A stretch of 64,000 nt of DNA. Source: Takakia lepidozioides. Lineage: Eukaryota; Plantae; Bryophyta. The DNA lies in contig CM060731.1 of NCBI GenBank assembly GCA_030704615.1, forward strand, positions 79,608,001 through 79,672,000, read 5' to 3'. Positions 12,770-59,250 of the stretch are shown piece by piece. Below the pieces are notes generated by a model that saw only the letters and a program-made list of their open reading frames with translations, was not told where the DNA came from and made no database searches. Within the stretch, counting starts at the first letter, position 1; each line of letters starts with the position of its first letter. The translations under genes and the position numbers were made by a program.

Positions 12770-13150
12770 CCTCCTTTGTTGGGACAGCTTGCTAGATGTC
12801 CAATTTTCTTTGCTTAAGTTTTATTTTTTTCTTTTTTAAAGAAAAGGGGACAGTGGCCTTGTAAGTTTTCTTTTGGAAGATAAGGGTACATATTCACAAT
12901 CTTTGGCACATACGTGGTGATTTTTTGCCAGAAAAAAAACATTGTCCATAACTCTCTCTCGCGGGCCTCCTTTGTTGGGACAGCTTGCTAGATGTCCAAT
13001 TTTCTTTGCTTAAGTTTTTTCTTTTTCTTTTGTAAAGAAAAGGCGACAGTAACCCTTGTAAGTTTTCTTTTGGAACGATGAGGGTACATATTCACAATCT
13101 TTGGCACATATCGGGTGATTTTTTGCCAGAAAAGGAAAGATGTTGTCCAC

Positions 13151-13152
<2 letters not shown>
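12770..13152. repeat. ~196-bp tandem duplication containing a LINE 3'-end remnant
   Basis: CCTCCTTTGTTGGGACAGCTTGCTAGATGTCC starts at 12770 and 12966. Confidence 0.9.
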
Positions 13153-13197
<45 letters not shown>

Positions 13198-13393
13198 TCG
13201 CTCCCTCTCGCTCCCCCTCGCTCCCCCTCTCTCTCCCTCGCTCTCCCTCTCCCTCCCTCTCCCCCTCTCTCCCCCCGCTCTCCCCTCCCCTCCCCTCCCC
13301 TCCCGCCCCCTCCCGCCCCCTCTCCCGCGCTCTCCCTCTCTCTCCCCTCTCCCCTCGCCCTCCCTCGCCCTCCCTCCCGCTCCCTCCCGCTCC

Positions 13394-13444
<51 letters not shown>
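13153..13444. repeat. (CT)n microsatellite with degenerate C-rich core
   Basis: Pure (CT)n at both ends with a polypyrimidine middle, flanked by TCCACAA at 13146-13152 and 13443-13449. Confidence 0.95.
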
Positions 13445-13770: not shown

Positions 13771-16700
13771 GGGTGCATAATAAGAGATTTTTTAATTAAA
13801 TTTTATTTTCTAAGGAGAAGGGCCCACCGCCCTTACCTCGCCGCTTCTAGAAAGCTCTAGAAGTAGAAGGAGGGCGTATAGGTGTCTTCTGCGCATGTCT
13901 TGGGCCCCGCTCCCATAAAGTAAAAATAACTAGGTTAAAGGACCACGTGGGCGCCACTCTAGTGGGACCCATGTAACTTTCGTCGGATGAAAGCCCCTGA
14001 AGCTAAATTGTAGGTGCCATGGAGGGATACGCCGCCCCAACCTCCACCCTGCAAGATTTTCCAAGGTATGAGGAGTCAAAAATATATGGCCCATGAGCTG
14101 TTGACTTGAGCACGTGGCAGGGTGGACGCCCTTGGAGGGCTACCACTTCGGGCAAGAAAATGCCAAAAATGCCGGGACAGCTGCCATATCCGGCAACATT
14201 GTGCGGATTTGGCATTCACTAGAAGACTCATTAAATTTCACATCCCAATCGGCAAATTGCAATTTGATTTTTATACAATGGCAGAACGGCAGAGACTATG
14301 TACCCCCAACTCATTTGCCCAGTTTTGGAAGGTCAGGCAACCCTACACTGTGGGAGGGGCGAATGGCTTGGGGCCGCGGGAGGCTTGGAGAGGAGGGAAA
14401 TGGCTCGACAGGGTGCAGGCACCTGTACGCCTAGGCTAGCATAAAAGTAGGAGGGTTGATGGGAGGTAGACAGCTGTATGGTTTTTTTTTATAGGGCATG
14501 GGATGGGGCGACACCTAGGTGCCTGCATCATGCCAGTTATCCAAGGTCATAAGGTGGGAGTAGCATTGTCTTAACATCTCACATCTACCTCTGTAAAATA
14601 GCCCGCTGTAGTATCTACTATCAAGTGCTTCAAACTTATACAGGGTTGACTGCTCGGTATACCTACAGATGAGGCCATCAGATCATTGCACTTCAGCACA
14701 AGAGACAAATTGCCGGGCCCAGAAGTCTTTTGGAACATCACATGATGAGCTAATCAATGTTATCACAGCGATTTCACAACTGAGGAGTTACCTCACTTGC
14801 GTGTGACTTGGCCTGCACTATTAAGCGTTGTCATCTGTACGAGATGGTTGTACTTTTAGACTGTTCGGAGATTCATAACTCCCATACGCGTGCACCGCGC
14901 TGTTTGCTGGATTCCAAGTTCTTGGTCTGTCATCTCCTTTGGTGCAGCCCAGGCGATTAATCGTCTCTTCTTCCCAAAACTATTCTCTCTACTGCAGCCT
15001 ACTAAGTTCGAGGTGCAGGTATCATTGGTTCTATTATTCTATTATATTTAGGAAAGTTAGCCCTACTCTTCTAGGGCGGTGGGTCTACGGGGAGTAGGTA
15101 GACTGGGATCTGTTTGAGCAGGACAGGATGGCAGCGTGGGCCATCCTGTTTGAGCGGTGGGCCCAGCGATGTTTGGAACCATAACTGCCTGGGCCAATGT
15201 GGTACCTTCAGGTATCGTACCTGCGGAGCTGAATCTGAGCCCCGTAATAGCTTCGCCAACCTTATCTTGAGTGATTCCTTGTGTGCAAGGTCCCATTGGC
15301 TGCCCTGGCTTTCAGGTGCTTACATGGATTTGTCAGGATGCCCACATGTCCTCTGTTGTCGTTTGCCTTATCCCTATCTACCCTTCCGACCCGGATATCC
15401 CGGCGAGCCAGATTGATACTGTACCGACTTCGGGAAAGATGAAAGTAGGGCAGACAACGAGAACTGCAGCTCTAGGCGGCAAGTCTAGAATTTCATCTTT
15501 GGAGACCTTAACTTCGTATATAGAATGGCTGTGAAGGAATAAATAAGGGTGAACTTTGAATGTGTAGTGTGTAGCTCATTTTGGTTACCGTAGATCTCTT
15601 TGTCACTTGCACGGAAAAGCTGTCTTGACTTCAGACATGTGTGACCAGTGCTCGCTGATCAGGCCTCTGCAGACAATTTTCAAGTGAGCAATGCCATATT
15701 CATTCAATATTTCAATAGCCCCTTTGTTTGTCTAATCTGGCATTGATTCAATCAGATCAACGAAGATTTGCAGTTGGATAAATGACATATTGAGAAACAA
15801 AATCCAATATTGAAAACCTGCTCAGCAAAACATACATATATATATCAGCTAATAGACCAACAGGGGAAGTAGCCGCAAGGTGCTCGGTGGCTCTTAGTTA
15901 TGCCGGCGGCCGGAGCACAATGGACTGAACTTAGATTGGTGCCATTTGTGCTTATTTTACAAGATGACATTGATCACTACTCGACATAAGCTAGAAAGAC
16001 AAAACTGTTGAAGAGAAGCAATGCAATCTGACTGGGTGAACCAAACTCCAATTTATATAACGTTGGCAATCTAGGTGTTCAAACATTCTCATGAACATTT
16101 CAAACATTCAGGGTAGTTCCAGGCCTTCTAAGTCAAGACTGTGAGAGTTTGTTCCCAATATCAACATTGTTGGATCCAATGCTGAATTGATTTAAGTGAG
16201 TGACGTTAAAGCAACTATATTTCATGAAGGGTGAATTGAACAACTTGAAGTATGAATATAACTCTCAGGTGCTTTGAATTATATGACCAGAGCCGATTTG
16301 ATGCCCTCAGGCAAGATCCTCACCCACTCTCGGCTAAATTTGAAGCTGGAATTACACAGCCTAAATCGATGCAGGGATAGATAACTGCACAAATCAATCT
16401 CTCGTCCTACTTTAATCCACTCCAATCTAGTTCGATGTTGATAACTACATTAGCTGGAATTGTCTGTTAGACATCCACAACCTTCTCTTTCGCTCATGTG
16501 CATTGGCTAGTCCACATCAAACAGTCCTCAAGTCGCAAGATTGAGCAAGTGTGGAAGCACTTTTTGATAGAAGATCTACATTGTATTGAATGAAATCCTC
16601 TACTTGACAAATTTCCTAGCAACTTGATTAGACAACATTTGAGAAAAGGATGAGTGCGCTGCCACTGGGGCAATGGCGAGGTAGATTTGGGGCTGTGAAA

Positions 16701-40700: not shown

Positions 40701-40744
40701 GTTTTTGGTTGCGTAGGAGGCGGCCTCGTGAACGAGAAGGATAT

Positions 40745-40745
<1 letters not shown>
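37735..40745 (-). mobile_element. L1-clade LINE, 3' part (RT from NILLVHEA onward, zf-RVT, 3' UTR, A-rich tail)
   Basis: LDSEKAFDKVDW, VRQGCP, MFVDDT, LSITGRALVAN, CLPKKKGGLG, FLWQIANRVL..CTCC..EHCL. A-rich tail at ~37735-37771. Confidence 0.92.
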
Positions 40746-40795
<50 letters not shown>

Positions 40796-41007
40796 CTCCG
40801 GCCGAAGCCGGCGTAACTAAGAGCCACTTCGCCTTGCGGCTACTGCCCCTTTTCAGGGGTGGGCCCTATGTGAAATGCTGGTGCCCAAGGGACACCAATT
40901 GACCGACTGATGGAGAGAAACCCGAGCCAAGGGTACCACATGGTACCCAAGGGGACCCACGGGGTACCCCATGGGTATCCACGGGTACCTAAAGGCGACT
41001 GGGATAC

Positions 41008-44000
41008 CTAGGGGGCAAGAGGGGGAATAGATTCAAGCTGATGTTTGTTGGTAATGATAGCGGTAAGAGAGCAGAGCGCCGTGAGGTGTATAACTTTAAA
41101 GCATTTATGGATGGAAGTGAGAGGAAGTTTAAAGTTGTCTTGGAGTGCGGAGATGCTGGCATTATGGATGCCCCTCTAGTGCCAGCAGAAATGACAGTAA
41201 GGGGGCCTGTGGCCCATCCTCGCCTGCGGATAGCAAGGATAAGCTGTGCATATTTTTGGCGTTTTTTGAGGATAGAGGAGCTGGGGAAGCAGTCGTGGCA
41301 ATATGTAAATTCTATGAAATGGATGGTGTGAGTAGGGGACGGTTCAGTGGGTGGGAGCGTTAGTGGGAAGTCCCTGGACTAGAAGGATATCCGGGTAGAG
41401 TCGGGCAGGGCATTTGCAGGATGAGTGAGGACTGCAATTACAGGGAAGCAGCCAAGGTGGTACCGTATGGTCCGGGGGTCGGCTTTGATAGGTGCCTGCA
41501 TTGATGAGTGAGAACCATCGAGTGACATTACATTTGAGGAGGAGTTTATGGATATGCCATACTACGTGGTTATGTCGAGCAATACGGAGTCCGTGGATGA
41601 CGGGGTGGGGACAATTATTGAGAAGATGGGGCCATGTATTGCGGGTCACGTGAATGTGGGAACAGAGTGGGCAGTGCGGGGAAAGGAAGCGGGTGGGCCA
41701 GAAGGTGTGCTTGCGCTGATGACCCATGTATTGGGCGTATCTGTTTTTGAGGGTCTGTCGTAGTTGAGCATCAGATACGGCTTTAGTGTGCAAAAAGTGG
41801 TTTGATAGTTTGTGGTGGAATACAGTGGATTGGGTCCACTTTTGGATATGTAGTTTGGTATGGCTAAGAGAAGCCGAGGCTTGTCTATTAGCTTCTTTAG
41901 TCAGAGTAGAATGAAGGTTCCGGATTGGCCGGGGTTCTGATGGGTCGGGTACCGGGTGAAGCAGCCAAAAGGGGTGTGCATGTGCGATGTGGATGGGGTC
42001 TGCCGAAGGTTCAACTGGGGGTTTGGAGCCCAGTTGGGCGAGGAGGTCTGCCTCCTCGTTGCTGAGGATGCCCGTGTGGGATCGAACTTTGAGAAAATGA
42101 ATGGTTTTATTAATGGAGATAGCGAGTTTGATAATTGCAGAGATAAGGTTTCTATCAGGGTGGTGGAGGTGGGAGGAAGGACATGCAAGGTGGTTACGGA
42201 GTATAAAGAGTGAGTTTAGGCTATCCGTGAAAATGTAGTATGGTGGTGGGAACGAGGCTAATTGTGAAATAGCTTCATAAATAGCCATGAGTTCGGCCCG
42301 AAGTATGGTTGCAGGGCCCAGGAGTCGGTGGGCTGTCCCTGTGTTGGTGGCGGCATGGTATACACCGTACCTGGCATGGGAGCCAGAGTGGGAGCCGTCA
42401 GTGTAGTGTGAATGGAGTGGGGGGTATTTGGGGGAAGTAACCCACAGGTTAACCGGAGGGGCTTCATGGGAGATAGTATTGTGAAGGGTAACGGGGCGGG
42501 GGGGGTGTACTGGCCCAGGCTTTGCTAGGTTTTGTCCTGGAGCATGGTCTGGCGAGAGAGCTATGTGAGTCTAGAGACGGGTAGGTGGTGAGTAACATGC
42601 CATGGGTAACGGATAGGAGATGGGTGAGACGAGTGGAAATGTCTAGGGGTATAGGGGTACGGGAGGTAGCTTTGACAAGCAGGAGTAGGGCTACAGTGGG
42701 TTCCTTGTGGCGGAGGTATTTAGGAAAGGGCAGATTGTGCGTACAGCAGAGATGCTTGGGTTCGATGACAGCTAATGATGTCACCTCTGGGGAAAGTTGT
42801 AGAAGGGGGTGTTGGTGGTCAGGTAGGCGTTGTTGTGTGAGGATGTTGCGCACCTCACTTTGGTAAGCTCCCCCTCAAGTCATAGTTACTCGCTTTGATG
42901 TGCGCGCCTGACTCCCAACCGGCCGCCGGGCCAACTTGGAGCTTCGGCTGCTCACCGGGACATAACGGTCCCCCTTCGCTCTCCCGAAAGACCCTCCACC
43001 TATTTGGGCCTAGTGGAATTCCCTTTGGTAGATGGCAGTCCGGAACAGCTCCCCACTCTTTGGTCGCTTTCCGGTTCGCTCGCTTACTCACTAGTTTTTG
43101 GTCACCAACGGGCTTGCACCGTTCTCGGGGTTACTACTCCCTATATATACTTCTGTAGCTGTCCGCGGGGGTTTCACAACCAGCCATGCCATTTTATGGC
43201 GAACCACCACGAAGACCCTCGATTCCCGGTGGTGAGTCGCGGTGAGTCTTGGCCCGCTCACCACGGCCCCTATGGACCGTGATGAGTCCCAAGACTCCCC
43301 ACGACTCCCACCACGAGGTCTCCGCCCCCATGGTGAGTCCTATGCCACCCCCACTAAGTCCCACTAAGCTACCACCACCCCTTGTGGAGCCACCCCCACC
43401 GCAACCCGGTGTGCGGGGCTCCACCTAGTGAGCGCCTCCGCTTCCCTGAGTGCCTTGGGCACTCAAGGGTGCTTCAGCCCCCCATACCTATCGCTGCTGC
43501 TGCCCCCACCATAGGGGCAGCCCCTCATGTGTCCCGACCCCCTGCCCTCAAGGCAAAGGGCCGCGACAGAGGATGAGGATAGTGGATGCGGTGGGGGAGG
43601 AATGAGCGGCAAAGCATGCCCATAGAAGAGCTTCGTGTGCAAGGGGCCCCGGTGGCGGATGTGCCAGGCCGCCACCGGACCAAGTGTGTTGAGTGGCTGA
43701 TCCGAGGGCTCCGAATACACAGTCCCGGGGGTGCGGGCTGTCATAGGGGGAGATGTCAAGGGGGCACGTGAGTGGACTTGAGTAATATGAGTGGGTAAGT
43801 TGGAATGCGGTGATGAGAAATTTGAGGATGTCTGGAGGGATAGTGCCGTGGGTATAGGTTTGAGCTAGTTTGTCGGGGGAGCACGGTTTTTTGGTGGGGG
43901 TGTCACTTAGGTATCTGTCGAGAAGTCTTGCTTTGGGGGTTGTAACTGGCTAGTGGTGGTGGTGGGGGCGGTATATCTGTTCCAGAGCCAGGCGAGCCTA

Positions 44001-44565
44001 ATATGAGGGATAGAGCCGGCGAAGCGGCCGTTAAATGTATAGATGTTGGACGCTATGCGACTAGGACATATGATGGGGGAGGTTTGGTCAATATCTTTGT
44101 CGGGGTTGCATTCAAAGATTTATATATGAATATTAGTTGCGACAAGGGGATTACGAATGTAGCGTGCATCTATCAACTGGGTTTGGGAGACATGATAGTG
44201 GTGGGTGTGTGCCAGAAAGTTGGTGTTAGTTGTTTTGTGGAAACTTGTGAGAAGGTCACGGTTATGGGCTGGGTCACAGTCTTCGTGGTTCCCAAAAAGG
44301 TCATCTTCGATTTGCCAGGTATTATCTTCTGTAGGGAATCCTGCCCATTTACAGAGATAGTAGGTATCTACACAGGCGGCACCGAATGAGTCTAGCAAGA
44401 TTAGGGTTTTGATACCGAGGATAGCTTCAATAACGAAGGCATCGAGGTGATCAAGGTTGGTTAGGTGAGGGACAGTCGGAGAGGTGGAAGATAAAGAGGG
44501 GCTAAGGAGGGGGTACGGGAGTTGGGTTGTTGCGGTATTGGGGGAGGGAGGTGATAGATACGAGT

Positions 44566-44601
<36 letters not shown>

Positions 44602-47600
44602 GGGGGCGAGTTGGGTTTTGCTGCTGGAGAATTGAGGTGGCAGGGGCTTTACGAAATTGTGGAAGGAGGTCTTGTTTGTGGTGTGGGAAGAGTGAACACG
44701 AGAGGTCACAATCAATGGTACAAGCAGTGGTCGGGTGCGGAGGTGTAACAAATATCGACGGGTTTTGATAGTAGCCCGGGAGTGTTTTAGGGTAAATTGG
44801 CACGGGGTGAAGAGCCTATTCCCAATAGTTGTAGTGAGTTGGGCAAGATGAGTAATATGACGAGTTTTGAAGTACGCAAGGATAGATTTCCTTTGACGGG
44901 GATGTGAGTTGCCAAATTGTGAGGAGAATGGACTATGAAGCCAAGCACGTTCAAGTGGCGATATAGAGTTGGGGAAGCCCGGGAGGTCGGTTTGTATGCT
45001 GATTCTCATTTGGCATAGGATGAACAACGATCGGGCAGTGGGGGAGTGGAGACAGGATTGGGAGTGGAGGGTGGGGAGAGAGTATAGTCCATTATATCTA
45101 GAGGCCAGGTGTTTAAGGAGCCCACTAAAAATCAGTCCGAGGCGGCCAAGATCGTTGAGGGCTTCTAGCAGTTGTGACCCCAAAGTGCGGGCATAGGAAA
45201 TAATTAAAGGGCTGGAGCCTATATAGTAGCTATCTTGGGGGAGCTGAGTGAGGGCGTTCGGGGTGCTAGTGGGTAGGCCACATATTCGTTTGGTGAGTTG
45301 GGTAATTTGTTGGTCAAGCTGTTTGATGTCTGGTAAAAAGAAGGGGGTTGCGTGGCAGGCGTATTAGACTTGTGGTTTGAGAACTAACTGGATTATGGCT
45401 AGTTTAGGGCGGATGGAGACTGGGGATTTGAGTAGGGCGAGACTCTTATTTTTTAGTTTGGAAAAGGTTGTGTCCCTCTGTATTTGCCAAGTGAGTGACG
45501 GGACCAGTTGTATGCCCAGATAAGTGTAGGGTTCGTCCGGGCCTAAGAACGGGAAGGGTTTTTATTGGTAGTGTATATGGAGCTTACAGTGGGAAGCTAT
45601 CGTGGATTTTGTGAGTTTGCTACGGTGTGTGGCTGCAGTGACCGCGCACTTATGAAGGCTTAACTCCATACCAGACCATTGATTGAAGCGGGATAATTTG
45701 TCCACTTGGCGATTGAGATGTTGCGGTTAGTGTGCAATGATGGCAAGGTCGTCCGCATAAGCTGCTGAAGAGATTTCATTGAAGGATGTTTTGTATTGAT
45801 ATCCTAGGTTGCCTCGGGCGAGCCATCTTAGCAAGGGTCGAGGAAAGTGATAAATAGGTAAGGGCTAAGTGTATCCCCTTGGATGGTGCCACATAATATG
45901 GGGATAGGTGGGGTGGATCCATAGTAGGAGCCAGAGTATTCGGTGGTGCTGTTGGTGTAGATATTACCAATGAGTTGGATAGCATCTATAGGGTATCCAA
46001 GCTCTGTCATAATGGCCAACAGGCGGGGATGGTCCAGTGAACCAAAGGCATTTTTGAAGTCAATATAGAGAAGATAGATATCTTGTTTAGTAAGTTTAGC
46101 GTCTTCGAGGGCAAAGATAACATATTGTATTTTCCGGGTAGTGCTACGTGTTGCTCGAAAGCCTTCCTGCGGGTCGCTTAAAATACGGTGTTGTTCGCCA
46201 TAGGAGGATAACATCGCAGTTAGTGTGCTGGTAAATAGTTTGTATATGGTGTTTGCAAGGGCTATGGGCCTGTAGTTACTAAGGTCCGTGGGGTCGCCTT
46301 TTTTAAATAGTAGGATGGTCCGGCTATGCTTCCAGGCTTGTGGTATACGATGTAGTCGGTAGCATAGGTGAAGGAATTTAAATAGAAGAACATGAAATTG
46401 GGGGTCAAGTGCTTGAAGTATGGCATTGGGAATGAGATCTGGGCCCGGGGCCCTAGCTTTGGAGAGAGCTTTTAGGCATGATTCATGTAAGTCAGTCGTG
46501 AAGAGATCAAGGATACGGTCAGTGGGGGAGCCTCGCTTTTCCAGTGAGAAACCGTCGAGATCATGCCAGGGGTAGTGTTTGACTTTACAGATGCAATTGG
46601 GTGCGTGGTGGGTGGGGTGAAGACAGTTGGTAACGTTAGGTGTATAGGAAGACGAGGCCTGGAGCCAGATCTCTGTGTTGATGTCAGCGGGTTTCGTTAA
46701 TAGGTGGCCTAGCCTGTGTCTGAGGCAGTCGATGGGTGGGTTGATTGCAGGGTTGAAGATGGCTTTGTGGGCCCATTTAGGGTGTTCATGGAGCAGTTGG
46801 CCAAAAGAGGCGACAAATTTTTTGTGGTTGGCGGAGGCTTTTTGTTTTGTGATAATATAAGCAGATTTTTTGGCTTCTCGTCCAAGTTTGGAGAGGGAGG
46901 CGGTCCATTGGGGAAGAGAAGGTGGGTCCTCAGGTGGGGGCATAATAGATTGACATGCGGGGAGAGTGTTCAAACAGGTGATGCGGGGGTCGGTTCTCCG
47001 GTTATTATATGGCGGGGTAGAGGAAGGAGCTATGATAGTAAGAGCCCGGCGTATGGTATGGTAGATGTTGAGGTGGGAGATCCATTCATGTTTCTGGGTT
47101 CGGGTGAGGTAACCCCCGTTTTGTTTCGATCGAGTGGTTTGGGGGAGGTCGGGAGGGGCGGAACATGTGGCTAAAACACTCTTAGTCATTTCTTGTATTG
47201 TAGATGCGAGTATGGACCCAACTTCGATCCAGGTGGTATCAGGGGAAGAATATAGGTTAGTATCGGTAAGTATGTGAGAGATCTTGTGTATAAAATTTGA
47301 AGAGGTAGGGTGGAAATGTTTTTGGAAAGCTTTGATGTTACATAGGGGTATTGGGGAGAGGATTCTAGGCTGGGGTGAGGGGGTATGTATATCTGACAGG
47401 GGTTGAAAGGGAATGAGGGAGGGAGGGAGGTACACGGTTATCGGGTAGTGGTCCGAGTTACATAAGCTATTGATGTGGACGTGGCTTATGAGATATGACG
47501 GAATTGTATTAACGGTTTTGAGGTAGAAACCATCAAGAAGGTTTAAGGAGGAGTAGTTAAGACCCCCTTGCCTAGAGTAGTGGGAGTCCGCGGGAATGTA

Positions 47601-50600
47601 TTTGAGCTGTAATAGGTTGGTGAATCGAGCCCATTCGTGGTCGGCTGGGGATGGTGGTTTGTGAGTTCCGTTGTATGAGTGTCCTTGTAGTGTGATGCCT
47701 CTGTTGAAGTTGCCGGCTAGTATGACATGGTAGTGTTGGTTATCTGGGTGGGTGACTGTGTGGGAAATAGTGTTTAATAAATCAGGTGTGAGGGGGAGGT
47801 CGTCGGTATGTGAGGGCATATATAGGTGGATGAGGGTGATAGGGCATAATGCTGGTGGGTGTAGGTGGATAATTTGAAGGTGCGAACGAAGGGGGATAGG
47901 AATGGCAATTTTGGTGGTGGTACTAGGGGAGTGATGTGTCTTAAGAATTCCAAGTGCTACTCCACCCCTAGTGGGTTTGTATGGTGCAGAGCGGCGCGAG
48001 AGACACTGCTGGGCCGTTAGGGGGGTGCCATATAAGAGGAAGTAATCGGGTAGCAATTTATTTATGTAGGAGCTGCTAGTATTGTGAGTATGTAGTTTGG
48101 TTTCTTATAGTAGGAAGATATGTGGTTGCGAAGAGTGGGTGAAGAGATGGAGTAGGCTTGGTATGCTAGTGGCTAGTGAGCCCACGTTCCAAGAGGTGAT
48201 CGTTAGTGTGTTGGGGCAGTCGCCGAGAATAGGGAGGGCGCGGTTGGGAGAGGGGGCAAGTGAGGGTTCCTCAGTAATGGCGGTGGCTGGGGGATCGTAG
48301 CCGGGTATCGGGGTGTAGACTGCTTGAAGTGTGGCAGAGAGGATATCATTGGAGAGGAAGGGGAATTGATTGGTGATGCGACGTTGGTCTAGGTCGGGCG
48401 TGGCTACTGAGGCGAGGTGGTCCCCGAGGATTTTATGCACTACTCCGGGTTTGGAGTTCAAAAGGTTAAGCGAGGTGTGGATTGCGGATAGGGAGTGTGG
48501 AGCGGCCAGGTAGTTGTGGGAACGTGGAGGTAATCTTTGTAATTGGTGAAGGAGGGAGCGGATCTGGGGGACTGAGTGGGAGAATAGGTATCCATTACAG
48601 GTCTCTGGGAGAGGGGAAATGAGGATGATAAGGGAGAAGAGGATATGTGGCGCGGGGAAGGATTTGAGTCTTAAGAGGGTTTTAGAGAGTGCCGGGTAGC
48701 AGCTGGACGGTAGTCCAAATGTTGTGATGTATTGCGTATGGTTAGTGGGTTGGTCGCATGGGAAAAATGGGGTGAAATGGTTGACAATGTGTCGATAGCT
48801 GCGCCTGAGCGACACAATGTCTGGTTGGAAGTATATAGCGTATCTGTCTTGTGCGTCTATGGGGAGTTCTTTGATAATATCGTTAATGGTGGTAGGGCCC
48901 GGGTTTGGTTGTATGTCTCCGCATCGTAATAGGATGAGGTCAGAGCAGGTATCTATGTAGGAGTTATCGGGGAGGGGGGATGATGGTGGTAGTGTTTGGA
49001 CCTTCCTAGGTGTAGTGGGTATCCGCCGTGTGGGCTATGGGTAATGAGAGGGGGCTGATGGGTATGGCGAAACTGTGTAAGAGTGTGAGGGTAGTTGGAG
49101 GGAGCGGGGGTTATGTGTTCAGAGGATTGATGGGTAGAGAACGGGGTAGAGTAACTTGCATGGGTGGAGAGAATAGGAGGGATATATTGAGTATACCTTG
49201 GGAAGGGGGATGTATATGGGTGCCCAGAGGGGAGGATGATGCAGATTGTGGGTAGGGGTTTTGGATGAAGTTCGTTCATCCATCCGTTAATAAGGGGCTC
49301 CCAGAATAGTGGGTGCAAATAACTAGTGGTATAGGGGACGTCGCCAGGGCAGACGTCGCCAGTAGTTAGGTAGACGTGGCATGTTTTGAATTTTGAAGCG
49401 TTGGGAGACGGGGCTAGTCCATGATCCATCGGGTGAAGGAAGGTAGTAAATTGCGGGAAAGGGTGTTTGTGGAAGGTGGTAAGCTGCGGGACAGGGTGTT
49501 TGTAGAGGCGCAACAGATCGCAGGAGTTCGCTGGCCAGGACATCAGAGAGAGAGAGCAATGACTAGTAGTTATTGGAGAATGTTTATATTGCTGCAGGAA
49601 GGTGTGATTCGAGCAGAAGTGGTCGGCATGCTGGAGCTCGATCAGAGCTAATGGGCGGTATTGACCAGTCTGTACATCAAGCGCGTTGTTGGCGTCACCC
49701 TCTGCAATTGAGGAGTTAGTGATGCCTGGTGGCAGGGGTAACTTGGCCAACACCACGTTAGCATGGTGAAAGAAATTCGCTAGATTCACTCCAAGATTCT
49801 GGGTGATCGATTCCTTCAGAGCCAACAGATATGCATGGTGTTCCTCCTATTGCTTTGTCAAGGTGGTGGCCACCCGCGATTCCATTGCAGAAAGTTCTCC
49901 ACGAATATCCTTTCTTATCGATATGGCATGAGCAGCTAGTTTTTTGTCTATCTCAGACATCATAGCTTCGTGACCACGAGAAGATTCCGAGTCTGGTTTG
50001 ATTGCAATTGAGTTCACCGTGTCGGCTAGCGCCTAGTTGATGTTTGCCTCCCGGAGCCTGTCGAGAATTTCCTTTGCCGGTGGTACAGCTCCATTCAGAC
50101 TGTTGTTATGTGGCTCGAAGTTGATGTAGCGGTCGATGACCAACACATGCGGTTTGTTGACCCACTGTGTGTAGACACTGGGGTTTTTGCACGTAATCAA
50201 GATCATGCCAGTGTGCTTGATCTTCTCTTCAGGAACAACCGAACAAAAATAGATTTGTGTGATGTTGTCTTTTCCAAAGATAGAGTGCAAGGCGTCCTCG
50301 ATAGCTGCCTGTGGATGCAGTTGGTTGAGATTTTTCACAATGAGCGTAAGCGCGTTTCTCTCTGCCACGATTTCCTGTGGGGTAGCTGTTAAACCCGTCA
50401 TGCTAGTTCGCCGAATTCGCAGCTGTGGTCTGATCAGCGTGAGAATCGGATGCCCTGTGTCAGCATCCTTGGTTTGGTGTCCTCGGAAGTGACGTATATG
50501 AAGCATAACTTGGACTCTGGCCCAATCTTGCGAGTGTAGAGGATCTCGTACTCATCACCATGAACGTGAGCTTCCATGATGAGATGCATTGTAAGCTTGT

Positions 50601-51762
50601 GGCTGATAGTTCCGTGTAGGCTTTCGCTTGTCATGTATAAAGAGAGATGTTCCATTGTCGATTGTAAATCGAATGCTTTTTCCACCTTACCTTGCATTGG
50701 TATGCCAGAGGACATCTCTATGACGAAGGCTCGGTCGCCTTTCAAGAGAGCGATGTCGTCCCTGGCTGGATGTATCAACTCGACCTTGAAGATGCCAGTC
50801 CAGTGCTTGCTGGCATGTTTGGAGTGGGCCATAATGGGCGAATACAGCGTAGTACCCAGTGGAATGTTCATCGCTGCAAAACGCTTCTTAGCCCTATAGA
50901 CAGCCTGTTCTTTGGGCATGTCGGTCTCTTTGTCAAACCTGATCAGAATGTGGTAGGGCGTCGCGGAGAGTCCAGAGACAAGGTCAACGATGGTGCCTTT
51001 TGGCAGTTGAGTAAGCTGGTAGAGTTGGCCTTCGCGACCATCCGGTCGAGCTATAGGGAAAAATAGTTGGGGTACGTGCGGGTAGGCCTTGAGGCCATGT
51101 CGCAGTTCGTATATCTCAGACGGGCAGAGCCCAAGCAGCTCGAGTTCTCTTGTCGTGCGTTTCTCCGTGACAAATGGGAGTTCAGCATCGTGTGCGTGTT
51201 GTTCAAGTGTGTGATAACCCATCCATAAGAGTGGCCCTCCTGGCGAGCTTGAAATTTCTAAGCATGGAGCTGGATCTGGCGAAAGAAATCCCCGTGATTT
51301 TTTGGGGTCGGAGTGGGTGCTTCCAGCCTCGCTGTTGAATGCACTGGAGGCACGCTTGTTGTGCGGGCTGAGAGTCAATGGCTGTGCAGGAGGCGCCTGA
51401 GTGTCATGGAGCTGGGTCACCCGTTGATTTTGTGTTGATGGTGCTGGGGTTGGGGCAGGTTTGTCGTGGACTTGAGCACTGTGAGACTTTGTCTTGTTTT
51501 GTGTCGAGTGAGTTTGATATGCTTGTGGAGTGGCGAAGAATTGTTCGTCGGATAAGTGCATGTCACTGACTTCCTCGTCGCCATCAAAGTGCTGGGAAAT
51601 TTCTGCATTTGCGTCATTGTGGTGCCCCATTTTTGCCGAGAGTCGCTGAGCAAGGAAGTTCACCGGAGATTTAGAGCTGAACATAGCCTTCCCTTTGTGC
51701 CTTGGCTGTTTTTGGATACTCCTCGAGCTTTTTTGGATACTACTAGATTTATTGCTAGACAT
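41008..51762 (-). pseudogene. Disrupted polyprotein of the Dualen-like element: RRM-like, APE, RT, chromodomain, MTase-like, RNase H, CCHC, restriction-like endonuclease
   Basis: RRM-like LTLIVKNL…GMILITC (~50100-50350). APE TSWNVGS (~48190), IFLL*ET, ILAGNFN, SDHYPI (~47440). RT YRPIAL, IDFKNAF, GTIQGDTLSP, YADD (45748-45759). Chromodomain 44237-44437. RNase H YTDGS/RAEL/FTDS/KVRSH/NEEAD (42028-42405). CPLC..H..C, RHN, YPDILLV, then after a frameshift IEFTY, KRQKY, GW, GTRG. Stop at 41008-41010. Confidence 0.88.
42844..43568. mobile_element. 725-bp solo LTR inserted in the Dualen-like ORF
   Basis: TGTTGCG…CGCGACA termini, 5-bp TSD GAGGA (42839-42843 and 43569-43573), central TATATATA (~43142). 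Excision restores the frame STILIL|TQQRLP. Confidence 0.92.
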
Positions 51763-52422
51763 GTGTGGAATTGAAGAGATTGAGTGAGGAGGGGAGATAG
51801 GGGCTATGTTGAGCCTGCAAAGTTTGTCACTGCCTGAAGAATGAAGGTGAGAGTGTGGGGTAGAGATAGAGAGAGGGCAGAGGCTAAGGGGTTGTGAGTG
51901 ACGCGGTAGAATATCTATAAGGAGAGAAATCGTTAGTGGACTAGCTGTGAAGGCGCCAATGTGATAACCATTCTTGATTGTGCCGTTAGAGTGACATCGA
52001 ATCAGACATGTGTTGGCTGCGGGCTGGGGCCATGACGGCAGAGGTTTTACGGCGGTGTGTAGGAGGTCAATATGTAGTTCATAGCAGAGTGGGGATGGGG
52101 TGATAATGTCATGTTGTGTAGGGGCCGAAAGAACGGCGGAGGTATGCTCTGAGCGTAGGGTGCTTTGATGAGGAAGGGCAGGAGTATTCGCTGCAAAGGA
52201 GAGAGCGTCTGGGGAAGTGAATGTTTTTGGCAGATCATGTTTATGGGGCCTACTGCACCGTTTTCCTGGCTGTTGGTGATTATGGTGTGGCAGGGAGGTA
52301 AATTAAATGTCGTTGCAGGGAGCATTGGTGTGGAATCTGAGAGCTTGTAATTAATGGTGTGTGGCTGCTGTGGAGGAGAATCATGATATGTGATGAACGA
52401 GGTGAAGTGATGTGGTGGTGGC

Positions 52423-55400
52423 CTAGATTTGGGAAAGTGGGGTATAAGGGTGGAGAAGCTTGAGTAATTCCCAGCAGTTCCATGACGCATGTACATTTGT
52501 TGTTGCATGCTGTGTGGGTATGGCAGGAGAGGTCGTATGATTACTGTGGAGACGTGCCAAATTGTGGTGTAACGCAGGAGCGAGTATCCTAATACATGTT
52601 GGGCTGCTCGCCTTAGTGGATGCGTAGGCGCTAGCAAATTGGCAGAGTTTGCCGGGTAAACGCATGATATAGGGCAAGCAGTGATTACATAGGGGCAGCA
52701 GAATTGAAGGGAGAGATGCTTGTAGAGTTGGTAAGGCCTGATACAGAAACACCTTTTGTGGGTTATCAGGTAGGGATGTGGGGTGGTTTGTGTCAGTTCG
52801 TGATACTTTTGGGATAAAAGGTGTGGTGTTTATAGAAGAATCAATGCAGGTGATACAAGGTAACACGGAATTTGCAGTACGTGTTGGGTGAGCCCAGGCA
52901 CTCCAGAGCATGTTGGTCGTAGACATGAAGTGTGATATATTGTAAGGAAAGCACTCTGTGCGATTGGCTTGCAGTGTCTCGTTTTTACTAGCACAGATTG
53001 TGGTGACTGGCAACGCTCTGTAAGTATAAAACTGAGGTACCAGGGGAAGGGCTCTTGGTAGACGGCATGTATAATTGTTAATGAGTATGATGGAGCTTTT
53101 TGGCACCCTAAGACACAGAGAGGCAGCTCTCCATCGTGTCCAACCATTCTGGTTGTGTGGGAGATGATACTTGTGAGGGTTGGATTTAAAAAAGGCTATA
53201 TTGTATTGCCGAGGGCCTTTGGGTGAGACACTTAGTGAGAGAAAAGGTTCAAGATAACAAGAATACAGATTGGACAGAAACTGCATACGAATATTGATCT
53301 GAGGACTTGTTGGGATAAGTAAATAGTGGCAGGTCTGAGTGCCATGGAGATGAGGATGCCAATGTAAGGGGAGCCAATCTCTGGGGAAAAGATAACATTT
53401 CCGAGAGCCTTGTGAGGGGGGTATGTGGAAGCAGGAGCAGGCGACATTAACTAGATAGCGTTCAGGAGAAGAATAATGCGATTGGGACTCAGACTGCATT
53501 AGATTATTGTTCCTAGAATCGTGTGGGATAAGTATACAATAGCAGTATCGAGTGTCATGATTGAGATAACAAACATACGGGTGGGACACAAACCACATTC
53601 GATTATAGGTCTGATAGCCATGTGGGATAAGTAAATAGTGGCAGTTTTGAAAGCCATGTAGATGATGATACCAAAGTAAGGGGAGCCAATCGCTAGGGAG
53701 AGAACAGTGTTTCTGAGAACCTTTTGAAGGAAGTCTGTGGGGGCATGTGTGTGCAAAATAAAGATAACATTCGAGAGAGCAATAGTGCGAATGGGACTGA
53801 GACTGCAATAGATTGTGACTCCGAGAACCGTGTGAGATTAGTATGTGATAGCAGTATCGAGTGTCATGTAACTGGGGGGGACAATGAAAGGGAGAATGGT
53901 TACTGGGGAAAGGACTCCATGAGATCACATCAGCCGACATTTGATGTGCATCATTCAATCTCCTGTGAGAGTAACTTTGGTGCCTTTGTGCTTGTGACAA
54001 TTGAGCTGGTAGAGATATTGTTACCTCTTCAGCAGTTGGCTGGTTGTGTAACATATCCAATAAGCCTATGTTCTTCTTCTCCTTGAAGTCCACCAGGACC
54101 TGCTGCTCAGCCTTCACATTGAGTATACATATCAGAAGCACGCCATGCTTGCCAAAAGTAGTTTTAGGATGGTGTTGATGGCGCTTCCAGTAAAGTTGGA
54201 GCTCATGGGACTGACTCAAGTTTTTGTGTAGCATTTGATGACAGGTTGCCAAAGCCTCCAGCCTGTCCATCACTACACCGGCCTCCCGGATATTGTCGTA
54301 TTTGTACCGAAGCTGTTTTTGGGCACTGGCTGGCAGACCTGCTGGCAACTTATTTACAAACTTGGGGCTGGAATCAGTTAAGTGATTGTCATGGATGTAG
54401 ACCCCACTTCGGGCCCTGGAAACACACCCATGTTCAGCATATCCAGCAATCAATGTAATCCATGAGACCACAACGCGTTCAGTCAACTTGTCAAGCATTT
54501 GGCATGTAGCCTTTGTGCTCCCGCATTCGGCATACGTGGCAGGAGGGGCAGTCTTCAGATTGGTATCTTTCATAATGCCGGCTTTAATGATAACATCATG
54601 AACCTCCTTGCCCGATATCTCAGAGAATATGTACAAACCTTGCAGCTTACTTTCATGTGTGGGGTTGGAAACAAGTAAGTGGCTGCCACAGAAGTAGACC
54701 CCACATCGGGCCCAAGATACTAAGAGAGGTTCCATATTGAGGGTGGCTGTTACACAAGTAGCTTCCCTCAGCTTTGCATGGAGCGCCTCTGACTGCTCCT
54801 GTTTCATTCGTGTGTGACTCTCTACCTCTAGTGAATGCTGCTGCAGCAACAGCTCATGCTCGTTCAGGTGCAGCCAGTTCATCCGCTGCAGCACACGCTC
54901 CTCAATTGGGTCAGTTGTTGTAAGTGTGGCGGTGTTTTGGAAATCACAGGTCCTCTGAGCAGCACCCTTACTTTGGTAGTAGCTGTTCAGTGCATATGAT
55001 GCATGGGAAGCCCTCGTGTTGGGTAAGTAACATGTTCCCTTTGATTGTATGGCTGAACAGTTGGCCCGACCACAGGCATAATCCAAAGCAGCTTGCAACA
55101 TACTATCACTGGCCCCCTGTATTGCAGCACACCGAGTTCTGCTGGTTGTTGAATTGATGCCTACATCTGGGATGCCAGTTCTAGTTAGGGCAAGTGCGTA
55201 AACGACAGACAGGTAGGCATTGAAGACACCATGGTTCCACTGCAAGGTGGGGCTGACGCCCTTATCCTCATTGAAAATTTCATAGAGAAATGTATCGATC
55301 ACAATGCCATGTCTGGCAAGAGGCCCAGTCTTGTTAAGCATATGCTTGATGAGATTGGTGTTGTAGGTTTGGGCAGTTGAAGCTGACACTCCAACCTCAT

Positions 55401-57185
55401 TAATATCCCCCTGTGTTGGCCACCCAGTCTCACTGATAACAACTGTGACATCTGAGTGATTAAGTGCAGCGATGGCAGTGTAGACATCATCCAGAATAGC
55501 AACAACCATGTTGGACGTGTGGAGGAACGCAGTGGCTGAATTCACATCACCTCGGTTGGGCTCGAATAGTGCATACTGAAGGGATATGACCTGTGAGTTC
55601 TGCTCATAGGCTGTAGAGGGGTATGAATTGAGCATGAAGAGAGACCCTGTTTCTGACAAGAAGTCCAGCATTGGTCGAATTACAGTCGTGGCAAATGTGC
55701 TGTTGGAGGTGCTCCTGGAGGAAGGGTAGGGGCTGCTAAGAGACACCACTGCGTAGGGGGTGGACACTTTGGTTTGCCCAACCAAGCCATTGGCCACCAG
55801 CCCTGAGTGGATGCAGTTCCTGGTAGGGAGTAGCAGCAGTGCAAGCGATGAATCACCAGTGGGGACCTCGTTGCCAGCGGCAATAGCAGTGATGTTGCAA
55901 GTCGATGCAAAGGGTACAATGTTGTGCTTTACCCATGTTGAGGCGGATGAATTGCTCTCGCCCAGGCTCAACGCCTCGTCGTTAAGCATCCCCCCTGCTA
56001 GCCGGATGTTTGAACCTTGAGAGGCCTGCATAACTATGTCATTTGTGTCGTAGATGCGCACATACAAAATACCCTACGTCTTCAGCAGCTGAGCCTTCTG
56101 CTGCGGTGCTGGCAGGTTGTTGCCGTTGGTTCCATAGTTTAGTCCTTGCGCTTGTGTATTTTTGAAGCCGTTGCACTTGCGCCGCACCATCACGTCGCAG
56201 CCCTGAGCCACATACTCGGTCTGTCTCGCAATGCGCCAGGTGTAGTCTAGCGTGTTGATCTCGAGGCTGTTGTGTGAAATCTTCATGAAAATGGGCCAGG
56301 GCAGGAGAACGGCTACCTGCTCCCAGCTGTAGGCAGCGTGAATCTTGACAGAAGGCCAGCATGTCGGATCGAAGTCATAGATGAGAGACCTCCTTGCTTT
56401 TGGTCAATGAGGGAATAACAAGAAACAACGACGCTTGGTTACTCCAACGCATACAAAGGGCGGAGCTGAGATGATACCTTTTGTCAGGCGGCGGGGCTGG
56501 AAAGCCGTGTGTAGGGATTGGGTTCGCCCATACGGAAGAGCTTTGAACTGGGGGAGCAGCCATGTTGGTCGAGCAAAAGAACTCCAGCAGCAGCGCACAG
56601 CCGAACCCTTCCACCGTCGGCAGCCAGTACTTGTGGTGTTGGAGAGCTCCAGCTTCGCACACGCGACAACAAAGTAGCTCCATGTATCGAGAGTGCAGCA
56701 GCATGCCGCTCTCGGAATCATTCTGCCCAACGTTGGCATTGCTATGCAAAAGCTCGAGCAGGGTCGCCTGGGCCCAATGCGGGCGGTAAGCTTGCGAGAA
56801 GGAGCTCGAAAAGCGCACATAAGGGTAGAGGTGATAGTAGTCAACATCAGAGCCACACGGCGGCTGGCTGTTTCTGCCATTGTTGCCTGAAAACTTGAAA
56901 GGGGGGACTTGAGGCCGCACTTGGCGAAGTTTCTGCGCGGGGTCTCTTCGAAGGTACGGAGAGGGCAGAAGGATATGCATTGTGGTCGCAGCTGGAGCGA
57001 GCTGGCTGGTGGCCTCCCCGATATGAGAAAAGTACCTTGAAAAAACAAAGATATGGAACCAAACGAAAGCTGTTGTAAGATAGCTTAAATTGAGCCTGGG
57101 AAGGATGTTGAGCTTTCTAGGCTGGTGTAGAAGAGCATGGCGGTGGCAGTTGCGTAGCAATGGAGTGAGCATTAGTCCCCGCCAT
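52423..57185 (-). pseudogene. Chimeric cargo ORF: unidentified fragments, GH17 beta-1,3-glucanase plus X8, coiled coil, PLS-type PPR repeat, His/Cys/Tyr-rich tail
   Basis: GCCGCCATGG start at 57185. Stops at 57117-57119, 56404-56406 and 56074-56076 plus one inferred frameshift, then 1,214 open codons. Motifs GLNYGTNGNNLP, VRIYD, AGNEV, SETGWP, LQAALDYACG..C..I..C…CDF..TATLTTTDP, and GKEVH…YAECGS…VVSWITLIAGYAEHG. Confidence 0.8.
53251..53868 (-). repeat. Diverged in-frame 309-bp (103-aa) tandem duplication
   Basis: HDTRYCY…DWLPL…CHYLLIP…CYL occurs twice, with unit starts at 53868 and 53559. Confidence 0.9.
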
Positions 57186-57365
57186 GGCGGCAACCCAAGC
57201 TAAAACTTAAGCAGAGGATAAACTGGCGGCATCACTAATGGGATAAGGAAATATTAACGTAATTGCTAAAAACTTTGGTAGAACCCTAAATAATAGTCAT
57301 GGTTACATAATATAGCTAAGGTAAGCGGCGGGAGCGCTCCGGGAGCGCTAAGGTGTACACATACC

Positions 57366-59250
57366 GATATTGTCAAGAATATATCTTCCCTTAACAAATC
57401 CAGCCTGCCCTGTTCTGATCAGTTGAGGAAGGAGGGGCTGGATACGAAGGGCTAGAGCCTTGGCGATGATCTTGTAGGCCACATTTAAGAGAGTTATTGG
57501 TCTGTAGTTGTCGATACTTGCTCTGTCTCCTTTTTTGAACAGAAGAGTAATAACTCCCTGAGACATGGCTTGGGGCATATGGCCATTGGCCTTTATTTTG
57601 TTGGACATGGCACAGAAATCCCCCGCTATGTGAGTCCAAAGAGCTTTGTAGAACTCTACTGGCATGCCATCAATGCCTGGTGCTTTATTATTGTTCATTT
57701 TCTTCAGCGCGTCTTCTAGCTCCATAGCAGTGAAGTCTTCCCCAAGGTAGAGGAAGTCCAAGGAGTTTAGTTTAGTGGGCACTACTTTCAAGCACTCTTT
57801 GAGCTTGGAGTGGTGAAGAGGGTCTTTTGGGTCTTTTGGGTCTTCCTGGAAGAGACTAGAGAAGTGGGAGAAAGCCAATCCACACATTTCTCTTGGATCT
57901 GATGTTGTAGAATGCAAGTTTTCAGAATGAAATTCCTGAATTCTTAGGATGGATCTGCGGAGCTTGACCTTCTCGAAAAAGTACTTGTACATTTTTTCGC
58001 CTTTAGCTGACCAGTTGATGGAGTTTTGACGTGCTTCCGGGCAGGTAGAGAGCGTGTGATCATCGCAATTAGAGGCTTCGATTCTCTTTTGGCAGACTCC
58101 GAGACATTTCTGAAGAGCCAGAGTCTTTCTTTTCCGCTCTGCCAAGATTTGTCTATTGAGTTCTTGACTTGCTTTGCTTGCAGCCACCAACTTAGCTTGG
58201 AATCTTTGGACGGGGCACAAGATATTATATCCATTTTGTGTCCAGGCATCCCTATGGCCTTGTTTGAAGGCTTGGATTTTAAGGTGGCTGGAATTTAGCC
58301 TGTAAATGCCTCTCCCTCTTTTTCTAGCATTAGGCATAGAAATAGTGCCAGAGACACATGTATGGTCAAATCCCTGTGCTATGGGGTCTTGAGGGTTAAG
58401 AGAGGCTCCATTAGAGATTGTCAAGGAAACGTAGATCCGATCTGATCTGGCCATGCTGAGCTCTTGGAGACAACGATTATTTGTCCAAGTGAAGGAGGGG
58501 TTGCATCCTCCCCGGCGGTTCAACGCATTGTCTATCTTTGCAAGGCTGTGGGTGTGCAGAAGTGACTCCCACTAGGTTTGCTCTTCGTGGCAAAGCTGTC
58601 CCGGGCTGGACCCTATTCTGTCTGACTCTTTCTCTACCATGTTGAAGTCACCTCCCATCACCCACGAGTGGGCAACAGATCTGGCAGAGATTTTTTGATT
58701 GATAAGTTGCCATAGAGTGGCTCGTTCTGAAGGGTTGTTGGGAGCGTAGATGTTTATGAAACCTATGGGGTCTAGGTCGCTTGGGAGCTTCAGGGAGCAG
58801 AATTGAACACGTCCTAACATCCAGGTTTCTTCTGCTATAAGGAATGGTTTGAGGGCGGGGGAAAGGAGGATTGCAGTGCCCCCTTTCGATCCTTCGTAGG
58901 AAGGTTTCCAAAGGGCCGCATCGGAGGGCCAGAGCTGGTCGGAAAGGTTGGAAATTTTAGAGTCCGTGAGCTTGTGTTCCTAGAGGAACCATTGCGTCTC
59001 CCTGTTGCAGAGGGCCAGAGCTGGTCGGAAAGGTTGGAAATTTTAGAGTTTGTGAGCTTGTGTTCCTGGAGGAACCATTGCGTCTCCATGTTGCAGAGGG
59101 CCAGCCAGGTCCGTAGTTTGAATTTTTTTTAAACCATTTGCTTTGGAAAAACAAAGCGAGAGAATAAGCCAAAGTTGGAGAGAAGGAGGGCTCGGAGGGG
59201 AGTGGGCTTAGCTTTTGCGAGGGAGAGATGCTCGCTATGAATGGAGACAC
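57366..59250 (-). mobile_element. L1-clade LINE, 5' part (APE endonuclease and start of RT), continuous with 37735-40745
   Basis: FLQEHKL, INIYAPN, MGGDFN, FTW, DRIY, KAPGIDG, NYRPITLLN, QAGFVKGRYILDNI. The 5' boundary is uncertain (GC-rich sequence continues to ~59760) and no ORF1 was recognised. Confidence 0.9.
58924..59104. repeat. 86-bp tandem duplication bounded by GAGGGCCAG microhomology
   Basis: GAGGGCCAG at 58924, 59010 and 59096. It frameshifts the LINE endonuclease. Confidence 0.92.

Follow-up and report, generated by a model that had tools for sequence, protein, structure and literature searches.

Dualen/RandI elements are non-LTR (non-long terminal repeat) retrotransposons, reportedly described by Kojima and Fujiwara in 2005. 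The first described Dualen carries a cysteine protease, a domain that is variable in the group and does not define it. The main characteristic of Dualen/RandI, and one unique to it, is the presence of an apurinic/apyrimidinic endonuclease-like domain (APE) together with a restriction-like endonuclease (RLE) (PMC5029228, PMC9977147), and the tails of RandI elements are all microsatellites or other simple repeats (PMC3747384). A survey from 2015 placed Dualen/RandI in green algae only (PMC4438587); cryptophytes were added later as hosts of Dualen (PMC5029228). We found no published report of Dualen/RandI from land plants in the searchable literature. Host sequence carried at the 5' end of a retroelement is known from another system, the 5' transduction and spliced exon capture of L1 and SVA elements, for example, in the MAST2-SVA F1 subfamily. 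Here, we describe a minus-strand retrotransposon of 16,620 bp (positions 40746-57365) in a 64,000-nucleotide stretch of the bryophyte Takakia lepidozioides (contig CM060731.1, positions 79,608,001 to 79,672,000; called the window below). Judged by its architecture, it is a long interspersed nuclear element (LINE) of the Dualen/RandI type in a land plant. It entered the reverse transcriptase (RT) gene of an older L1-type LINE in a single event, and it looks like a one-off chimeric insertion with host sequence at its 5' end rather than a member of a cargo-carrying family.

The insertion has exact boundaries. A 6-bp target site duplication (TSD), GATATT on the plus strand and AATATC on the strand of the element, adjoins both ends directly (Table 1), and the flanks are the two halves of one L1-type RT gene that lies on the same strand as the element. 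When the element and one TSD copy are excised, the flanking minus-strand open reading frames (ORFs) fuse, with ...GFVKGRYILDNI joined to LLVHEAASY...SEKAFDKV and nothing lost or gained. The rejoined host protein has a continuous L1-type RT motif, and BLASTP matches to other LINE RTs cross the join. Discounting a later nested insertion, the unit that integrated in one event measures 15,890 bp. The first-pass annotation of this DNA had proposed a 6-bp TSD around the entire 16,620 bp, a split LINE RT that rejoins, a (TC)n 3' end, and the insertion of about 15.9 kb at once. All four proposals stand: the TSD copies and the tail are where they were said to be, the host gene rejoins in frame, and the outermost position of the TSD together with the exact rejoining of the host bears out the single event.

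The composition of the element changes sharply near 53.93 kb, as might be expected if the 16.6 kb were a misassembly or two independent adjacent insertions, namely, an ~11-kb LINE and an unrelated 5' block. Our read check made use of public contigs with the same organism label, not long reads, and covers 51.5-57.4 kb only. However, one reading frame crosses the composition boundary, and the independent contigs tile 51.5-57.4 kb at single-copy depth; one of them, 1,912 nt long and from a public DNA run, reads across the 5' junction without a mismatch. Moreover, the TSDs are outermost, and exact rejoining of the host ORF requires the removal of all 16,620 bp. We consider a misassembly or a double insertion very improbable.

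By homology, the element has the dual endonuclease of Dualen/RandI. Its domain order is APE, RT, chromodomain, PCIF1-like domain, RNase H, and CCHC zinc knuckle with RLE. The APE resembles that of a relative, L002, whose protein bears Pfam Exo_endo_phos, and the motifs WN..S, (Q>stop)ETKL, GNFN, and SDH can be read in it. In the RNase H domain, the D, E, D, and D residues are readable, and the identity to the RNase H of L002 is 39-44%. The C terminus shows the motifs CPLC...H....C, RHN, PD, IEFTYC.D, and KKRQKY; an alignment of 14 C termini shows no variation at the three Cys, the RH His, or the PD and very little at the zinc-knuckle His, the RH Arg, or the Glu. A search of the PDB with a single sequence, the 314-aa C-terminal ORF, gave marginal matches to RNase H1 only, and the RLE required a profile. 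The profile of the 14-sequence alignment, run against all PDB sequences, matched R2 retrotransposon proteins only (1e-6 to 1.3e-3), over the CCHC and RLE region of R2. Consistent with this, an AlphaFold model of the C terminus of L002, which is 39-51% identical to this copy (predicted local distance difference test [pLDDT] score, 84), had R2 structures as its top 7 Foldseek matches (6.5e-7 to 1.7e-4), followed by a restriction enzyme and viral cap-snatching PD-(D/E)xK nucleases. The CCHC and RLE are homologous to those of R2 (R2Bm and R2Tg; PDB accession numbers 8gh6, 8ibw, 9dou, and 9nl2), with a profile E-value of 1e-6, a Foldseek E-value of 6.5e-7, and a template modeling (TM) score of ~0.55. 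In contrast to this element, which has an APE and inserted into another LINE, R2 is specific for ribosomal DNA and lacks both APE and RNase H. An N-terminal APE paired with a C-terminal CCHC and PD-(D/E)xK endonuclease had been read in this DNA before. Both are present, though neither is intact in this copy, and the R2-only matches of the profile support the PD-(D/E)xK domain.

What are the relatives of this element? With the 742-aa APE-RT ORF as the query, a set of 1.84 billion representative proteins yielded 327 matches below 1e-30, many of them 2,000-4,200 aa long; the relatives are almost entirely metagenome, ENA, or Logan proteins. RVT_1 was found in all four long relatives that were scanned, with Exo_endo_phos in one (P0008), PCIF1_WW and RNase_H in the other three, and Josephin in P0025, and ~30 long relatives have the same RNase H-CCHC-RLE C terminus. 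Precomputed domains of other relatives add OTU, PHD, and SET; an OTU or Josephin domain occurs in P0322, P0025, P0337, and P0340. Accessory domains of these types match those of published Dualen (PMC5029228). The accessory modules vary between relatives, with a C5 DNA-methyltransferase-like motif (PPCQPYS) in P0085, a C-terminal chromodomain in P0072, PHD in P0339, SET in P0354, and OTU in P0322. Metagenome or ENA contigs (L001, L002-L004, L005, and L006) are colinear with the element, in the order N-terminal block 1, block 2, 2A/APE, RT, chromodomain (in L001), PCIF1-like domain, RNase H, and RLE. At the DNA level only the RT core matches L001-L006, at ~68%. L002 has two oddities of its own: a 4.7-kb insert with a fragment of MR_MLE_C (enolase superfamily) between the two conserved N-terminal blocks (L002:2300-7000) and a PCIF1-RNase H-RLE half whose orientation is opposite to that of APE-RT, with the switch at a (TA)n run (L002:12400-15000). 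These could be cargo, a nested transposable element, or an assembly artifact.

In a maximum-likelihood tree of 78 RT cores, for which an X took the place of the break between the two frames of this RT and of each stop, the element falls into a 7-member group (SH-aLRT support, 99) nested in a 65-member clade (99). The larger clade consists mostly of giant multidomain LINE proteins of 2-4 kaa, and 13 L1-like RTs from the same searches lie outside it. The earlier assignment to a Dualen/RandI-type pairing in a land plant agrees with the architecture, that is, APE, RT, RNase H, CCHC-RLE, and a microsatellite tail. The closest known elements include Dualen-4b_cRei of Chlamydomonas and the cryptophyte Dualen-1_GCr. 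Like Dualen/RandI elements it combines APE and C-terminal CCHC-RLE with RT and RNase H in one polyprotein, has a microsatellite 3' tail, and belongs to a set of very long ORFs with acquired accessory domains (OTU/Josephin and SET in relatives). It differs in its land plant host, in the chromodomain after RT, the PCIF1-like domain, and the 2A-like site before APE, and, in this copy, in the absence of a detected cysteine protease and the presence of host exons at the 5' end. Dualen-4b produces duplications with a median of ~900 bp at more than half of its active insertions (PMC9977147), in contrast to the 6-bp TSD seen here. The first-pass annotation was not aware of a description of this architecture; its size has a precedent in a cryptophyte Dualen of 5,287 aa with extra domains (PMC5029228). 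No LINE group other than Dualen/RandI has both endonuclease types; the group serves in arguments on how APE replaced RLE in LINE evolution, and a diversified lineage in a land plant would extend its range in the searchable literature beyond green algae and cryptophytes.

This copy is a dead fossil in which neither the endonucleases nor the RT is intact. In the APE, a stop at 48105-48107 replaces the Q of QETKL and GDFN has become GNFN. The RT has one frameshift near 45840 and three in-frame stops, the frame changes between RT, chromodomain, PCIF1-like domain, and RNase H, the RLE region holds two frameshifts, and the PCIF1-like domain is split by an LTR insertion. The damage is distributed unevenly: at least 6 frame changes fall in the 7.9-kb enzymatic part, whereas the 5' 6.6 kb has few stops and no evident frameshift. 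We estimate, roughly, that this unevenness is only weakly significant; new stops are also less likely to arise in C-rich sequence.

Sequence conserved in the family begins inside a 442-aa ORF (50434-51762). The N-terminal protein region to which it belongs is possibly ORF1-like; neither Pfam nor Atlas gave a usable match to the 442-aa ORF. In the AlphaFold model of the conserved N-terminal block (mean pLDDT, 50.7), which was too weak for a structure search, a beta-alpha-beta pattern hints at an RRM-like fold. The 5.6 kb upstream of the start of the conserved ORF is missing from L001, L002, L005, and L006. All of it had been regarded as 5' cargo. We retain ~3.3 kb (53.9-57.4 kb) as host derived, consisting of the leader, a GH17-X8 module, a coiled-coil-like piece, and a pentatricopeptide repeat (PPR) piece; the other 2.2 kb is C-rich, LINE-like, and in frame with the N-terminal ORF. 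This C-rich stretch shares the strong C-over-G bias of the LINE body, and the mosaic at 53931-57365 has no skew. Two 312-bp tandem units (76% alike) on the minus strand at 53240-53868, within the C-rich ORF, encode Cys/His-rich repeats.

One host-derived module is the GH17-X8 gene piece, which aligns to residues 5-437 of a 484-aa Sphagnum protein with 54% identity; its nearest matches are Sphagnum proteins (54-56% identity), followed by those of other land plants. Neither the signal peptide nor the C-terminal tail is present, one in-frame stop occurs (56074-56076), and both catalytic Glu motifs, GNEV and SETGWP, are retained. The PPR reading comes chiefly from motifs read by eye, with a Pfam PPR value of only 0.16, and neither Pfam nor Atlas gave a match to the 5' leader. 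In element coordinates (el), which run downwards from 57365, one frame runs from the cargo into the 442-aa ORF. Between el 282 and 6929, this frame 3 is interrupted by 6 stops, at el 960, at el 1290, and in a cluster of four at el 4941-5061. Over el 3300-5700 it has 4 stops, compared with 14 and 44 in the other frames and ~32 expected from composition. We saw no poly(A) remnant at the boundary between cargo and C-rich stretch.

The TSD lies outside the cargo, which rules out a later insertion of the cargo into the element; the cargo was therefore either part of the cDNA or gained during the same integration. As in 5' transduction, nonelement sequence is located at the 5' end, in sense orientation, and within the TSD. 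We favor 5' transduction or exon capture, to which we would give roughly even odds, because the module edges resemble exon borders, there is no inner poly(A), and one frame is kept throughout. The insertion shares with L1/SVA 5' transduction the sense host sequence 5' of a retroelement within one TSD and the spliced exons, and it differs in that the host sequence is a 3.3-kb mosaic of several genes, fused in frame to the ORF of the element, with no cargo subfamily detected.

The main rival is a switch of the RT from the LINE RNA onto host mRNAs at integration, as in U6-L1 and mRNA-L1 chimeras. It would account for an entire unit within one TSD, for modules that all have one orientation, for a GH17-X8 piece without introns, and for cargo that combines at least 3 unrelated gene pieces and is missing from related elements. 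However, GH17-X8 begins right after the signal peptide and stops right after X8, with borders that resemble exon borders and not RNA ends, and the contig of a paralogue diverges at one of these borders, 56145. Template switching would also have to explain why the boundary with the C-rich stretch bears no poly(A) remnant and why a single frame was kept, for which the chance is ~1 in 3 per junction if random. We regard it as a possible but doubtful origin of the cargo.

We used the depth of contigs (identity of at least 85%, contigs only) as a guide to copy number. In the DNA run X1, the stretch at 51.7-54.1 kb, which connects the host part with the canonical ORF, has a depth of 34-58 (85 in one bin) and thus behaves like single-copy sequence. 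A single paralogue is indicated by weaker contigs that match 55.66-57.34 kb at 87-92% identity. The PPR stretch at 54258-54651 is repeated about 25-fold in DNA contigs (relative to a depth of ~40 for a single copy), which implies at least 25 near-identical copies; either the PPR family is large and has recently expanded, or this piece belongs to a repeat. Over much of 51739-52057 and 52346-53391, the only DNA-run contigs reported differ from the window, by ~0.5% and up to 4% (12/319 nt at 51739-52057), and they represent either another genotype that shares the insertion or a close paralogue.

Contigs of another study (run X5) cover the host-derived cargo (54061-57212) with 99.2-99.7% identity. 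One contig of 1,417 nt (55658-57074; 11 mismatches) joins the leader to the GH17 module without interruption, and another of 632 nt spans 54272-54903 (2 mismatches); no X5 contig lies over 51697-53863 or past 57212. An X5 contig with 88% identity stops matching exactly at 56145 and continues as unlike sequence, and X5 contigs break at 54903/54906; these positions are the borders of the GH17-X8 module. Low-coverage DNA does not explain X5, as the depth ratios to X1 are too uneven and drop to zero on the C-rich region. Our guess is that X5 is an RNA run. If so, transcription would include the cargo but not the adjoining C-rich ORF, and the cargo may be its own transcription unit.

Could the cargo be selected and heritable in a propagating subfamily, either a true Pack-LINE, as the first-pass annotation had it, or a Dualen with GH17-X8 in the polyprotein upstream of 2A? 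The cargo shares the frame of the N-terminal ORF and has hardly any stops, it retains the catalytic GNEV and SETGWP motifs, acquired accessory domains are common in the Dualen clade (PMC5029228), and L002 has its 4.7-kb insert with the MR_MLE_C fragment in the same N-terminal region. Against this, 51.7-54.1 kb is single copy and 56.0-57.4 kb near single copy at the identity threshold used, the cargo is wholly missing from four related elements (L001, L002, L005, and L006), and the probable RNA contigs cover the cargo and not the adjoining C-rich ORF. Neither the contig depth nor the four related elements revealed several independent cargo-bearing copies. We therefore regard the Pack-LINE claim as supported only in part and consider a cargo-bearing subfamily quite unlikely. 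Pack-MULEs and gene-fragment Helitrons likewise have host gene fragments inside a transposable element, but they are DNA elements with many cargo-bearing copies, unlike the single retroelement copy with cargo at its 5' end described here. A related and unlikely idea is that this land-plant Dualen lineage uses its long and variable N-terminal ORF, ahead of the 2A-like site, as an exon trap: host exons would be spliced or transduced into it in frame again and again, be expressed as a separate protein through ribosome skipping, and be moved to new loci. If true, it would constitute an RNA-level route of exon shuffling in plants, of which this 16.6-kb copy, with a cargo part that still appears to be transcribed, would be one snapshot.

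Altogether, we read the locus as an old, defective full-length copy of a Dualen/RandI-type LINE that arose in one event from a chimeric RNA, later received an LTR, and decayed, a reading to which we assign a probability of about 0.8. A giant ORF would once have encoded the conserved N-terminal protein, the 2A-like site, APE, RT, chromodomain, PCIF1-like domain, RNase H, CCHC, and RLE. Target-primed reverse transcription would have placed the copy in the RT gene of the older L1-type LINE, with staggered nicks 6 bp apart giving rise to the TSD and the plus-strand 3'-OH at ...GGATATT presumably priming the copying of the (UC)n RNA tail. The copied RNA would have carried the 2.2-kb C-rich stretch and ~3.3 kb of host sequence upstream of the canonical element, and its source would have been a read-through or spliced transcript that started in host sequence upstream of the source copy. 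An LTR retrotransposon would then have entered the PCIF1-like domain and been reduced to a solo LTR, and point mutations and indels would have disabled every enzymatic domain.

Several points weigh against this reading. The long open frame across the cargo, set against the frameshift-rich enzymatic part, is not accounted for by simple neutral decay, and the C-rich 2.2 kb has no match in Pfam or Atlas. The parent loci of the cargo were not identified, and the capture mechanism is inferred. Pfam gave no direct match to this copy's own APE pieces, the RNase_H score of 25.8 bits is exactly the Pfam cutoff, and Pfam found no cysteine protease in the N-terminal ORFs of this decayed copy. Membership in the clade comes from the architecture and from a tree that is unanchored by named Dualen/RandI, R2, CRE, RTE, and L1 sequences. 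Contig depth is a poor measure of copy number, and copies that are more than 15% diverged would escape it.

The weight of the locus is limited by its being a single dead copy. The in-frame 5' mosaic of host exons, moved as one 16-kb cDNA, would nevertheless be a natural plant case of LINE-mediated exon capture, and the insertion shows that the enzyme set is able to copy at least 16 kb in one event.

Table 1. Features of the element and its surroundings in window coordinates, and summed contig depth in DNA run X1
Feature	Positions	Strand	Detail
3'-side TSD copy	40740..40745		GATATT on +
(TC)n microsatellite tail	40746..40794 (~)	-	(AG)n on + strand
3' untranslated region (UTR) with terminal stem-loops	40795..41028	-	fold z-score -1.6
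CCHC zinc knuckle + RLE (PD...E...K)	41029..41680	-	two frameshifts; read across by homology
RNase H domain	42020..42429	-	Pfam RNase_H 1.4e-5, 25.8 bits
PCIF1-like domain, C-terminal part + linker	42464..42838	-	in frame once LTR-like insert removed
Later nested insertion, probably solo LTR	42844..43568		725 bp, TGT...ACA ends, 5-bp TSD
PCIF1-like domain, N-terminal part	43569..43925	-	Pfam PCIF1_WW 6.7e-5, below cutoff
Chromodomain between RT and PCIF1-like	44282..44434	-	Pfam Chromo 2.1e-6, 28 bits, cutoff 25.1
Reverse transcriptase	44770..46862	-	Pfam RVT_1 3.4e-16; YADD kept
AP-endonuclease-like domain (APE)	47091..48692	-	34% identity/547 aa to L002 APE, E 6e-82
2A-like motif GDIQPNPGP	48894..48917	-	APE frame, ~200 nt upstream of first APE homology
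Family-conserved N-terminal protein region, 442-aa ORF + next frame	50036..51762	-	blocks shared with L001, L002, L005, L006
C-rich, coding-like region	51763..53930	-	single-copy depth; in frame with mosaic and N-terminal ORF
Host-derived mosaic: coiled-coil-like piece + degenerate PLS-type PPR repeat(s)	53931..54906	-	motifs by eye
Intron-free GH17 beta-1,3-glucanase + X8	54907..56145	-	Pfam GH17 1.8e-48, X8 3e-19
5' leader, 5' end of inserted unit	56146..57365	-	1.2 kb, near single-copy depth
5'-side TSD copy	57366..57371		GATATT on +
X1 summed depth	51500-51696		158
X1 summed depth	51697-54060		34-58, one bin 85
X1 summed depth (PPR)	54258-54651		about 900-1150
X1 summed depth, GH17 module			70-147
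X1 summed depth	56031-57400		41-87

The extra domains expected from the earlier reading were found, in the form of a chromodomain and a PCIF1-like domain. A chromodomain is a chromatin-targeting device typical of LTR chromoviruses. Closer relatives and L001 have weak chromo-like matches in the same position as in this element, and the canonical chromodomain of the distant relative P0072, at the extreme C terminus, suggests a separate gain. The N-terminal part of the PCIF1-like domain is 45% identical to L002, and its Pfam match is above the cutoff in the relatives P0029 and P0025; Pfam gave no match to 42464..42838 alone. The site of the [DN]PP[FY]-type motif reads HPPP in this copy. In this sublineage, including L002, L005, and L006, the catalytic-motif site is HPPP, HPPD, or HPTT, compared with NPEY or VPPF in algal-type relatives. 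The N6-adenine methyltransferase motif thus looks lost in the sublineage, which makes methyltransferase activity doubtful. We found no literature on PCIF1 in retroelements.

The 2A-like ribosome-skipping motif GDIQPNPGP is also present in the relatives P0213 and P0292, and 2A-like peptides are known from APE-type LINEs (PMC3708506). The site would separate an ORF1-like N-terminal product from the enzyme polyprotein. Together with the chromodomain and the PCIF1-like (cap-methyltransferase-like) domain, it gives rise to ideas on targeting and RNA handling.

The nested insertion is probably a solo LTR, as had been proposed. In addition to its TGT...ACA ends it has a TCCTC TSD (43569-73 and 42839-43), it lacks the GC skew, and its GC content is above that of the LINE body. 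Similarity to the closest intact relative breaks at 43569 and picks up again near 42830, and excision of the insertion with one TSD copy joins ...ILIL to TQQRLP... in frame within the PCIF1-like domain. The 64-kb window contains no second copy that would confirm its family.

At the 3' end, predicted stem-loops in the last ~55 nt before the tail are suggestive, and Rfam found no family at 40-58 kb. We saw no further copies of the element in the window except microsatellites and one 55-nt look-alike of its 3' end. Long (TC)n/(AG)n arrays at 13150-13444 have a repeat unit identical to that of the element tail. The look-alike, at 15860-15915 on the plus strand, repeats the last ~55 nt of the 3' UTR alone, 82% alike and without a (TC)n tail, and may be a tail-derived mini-retroposon or a short interspersed nuclear element (SINE).

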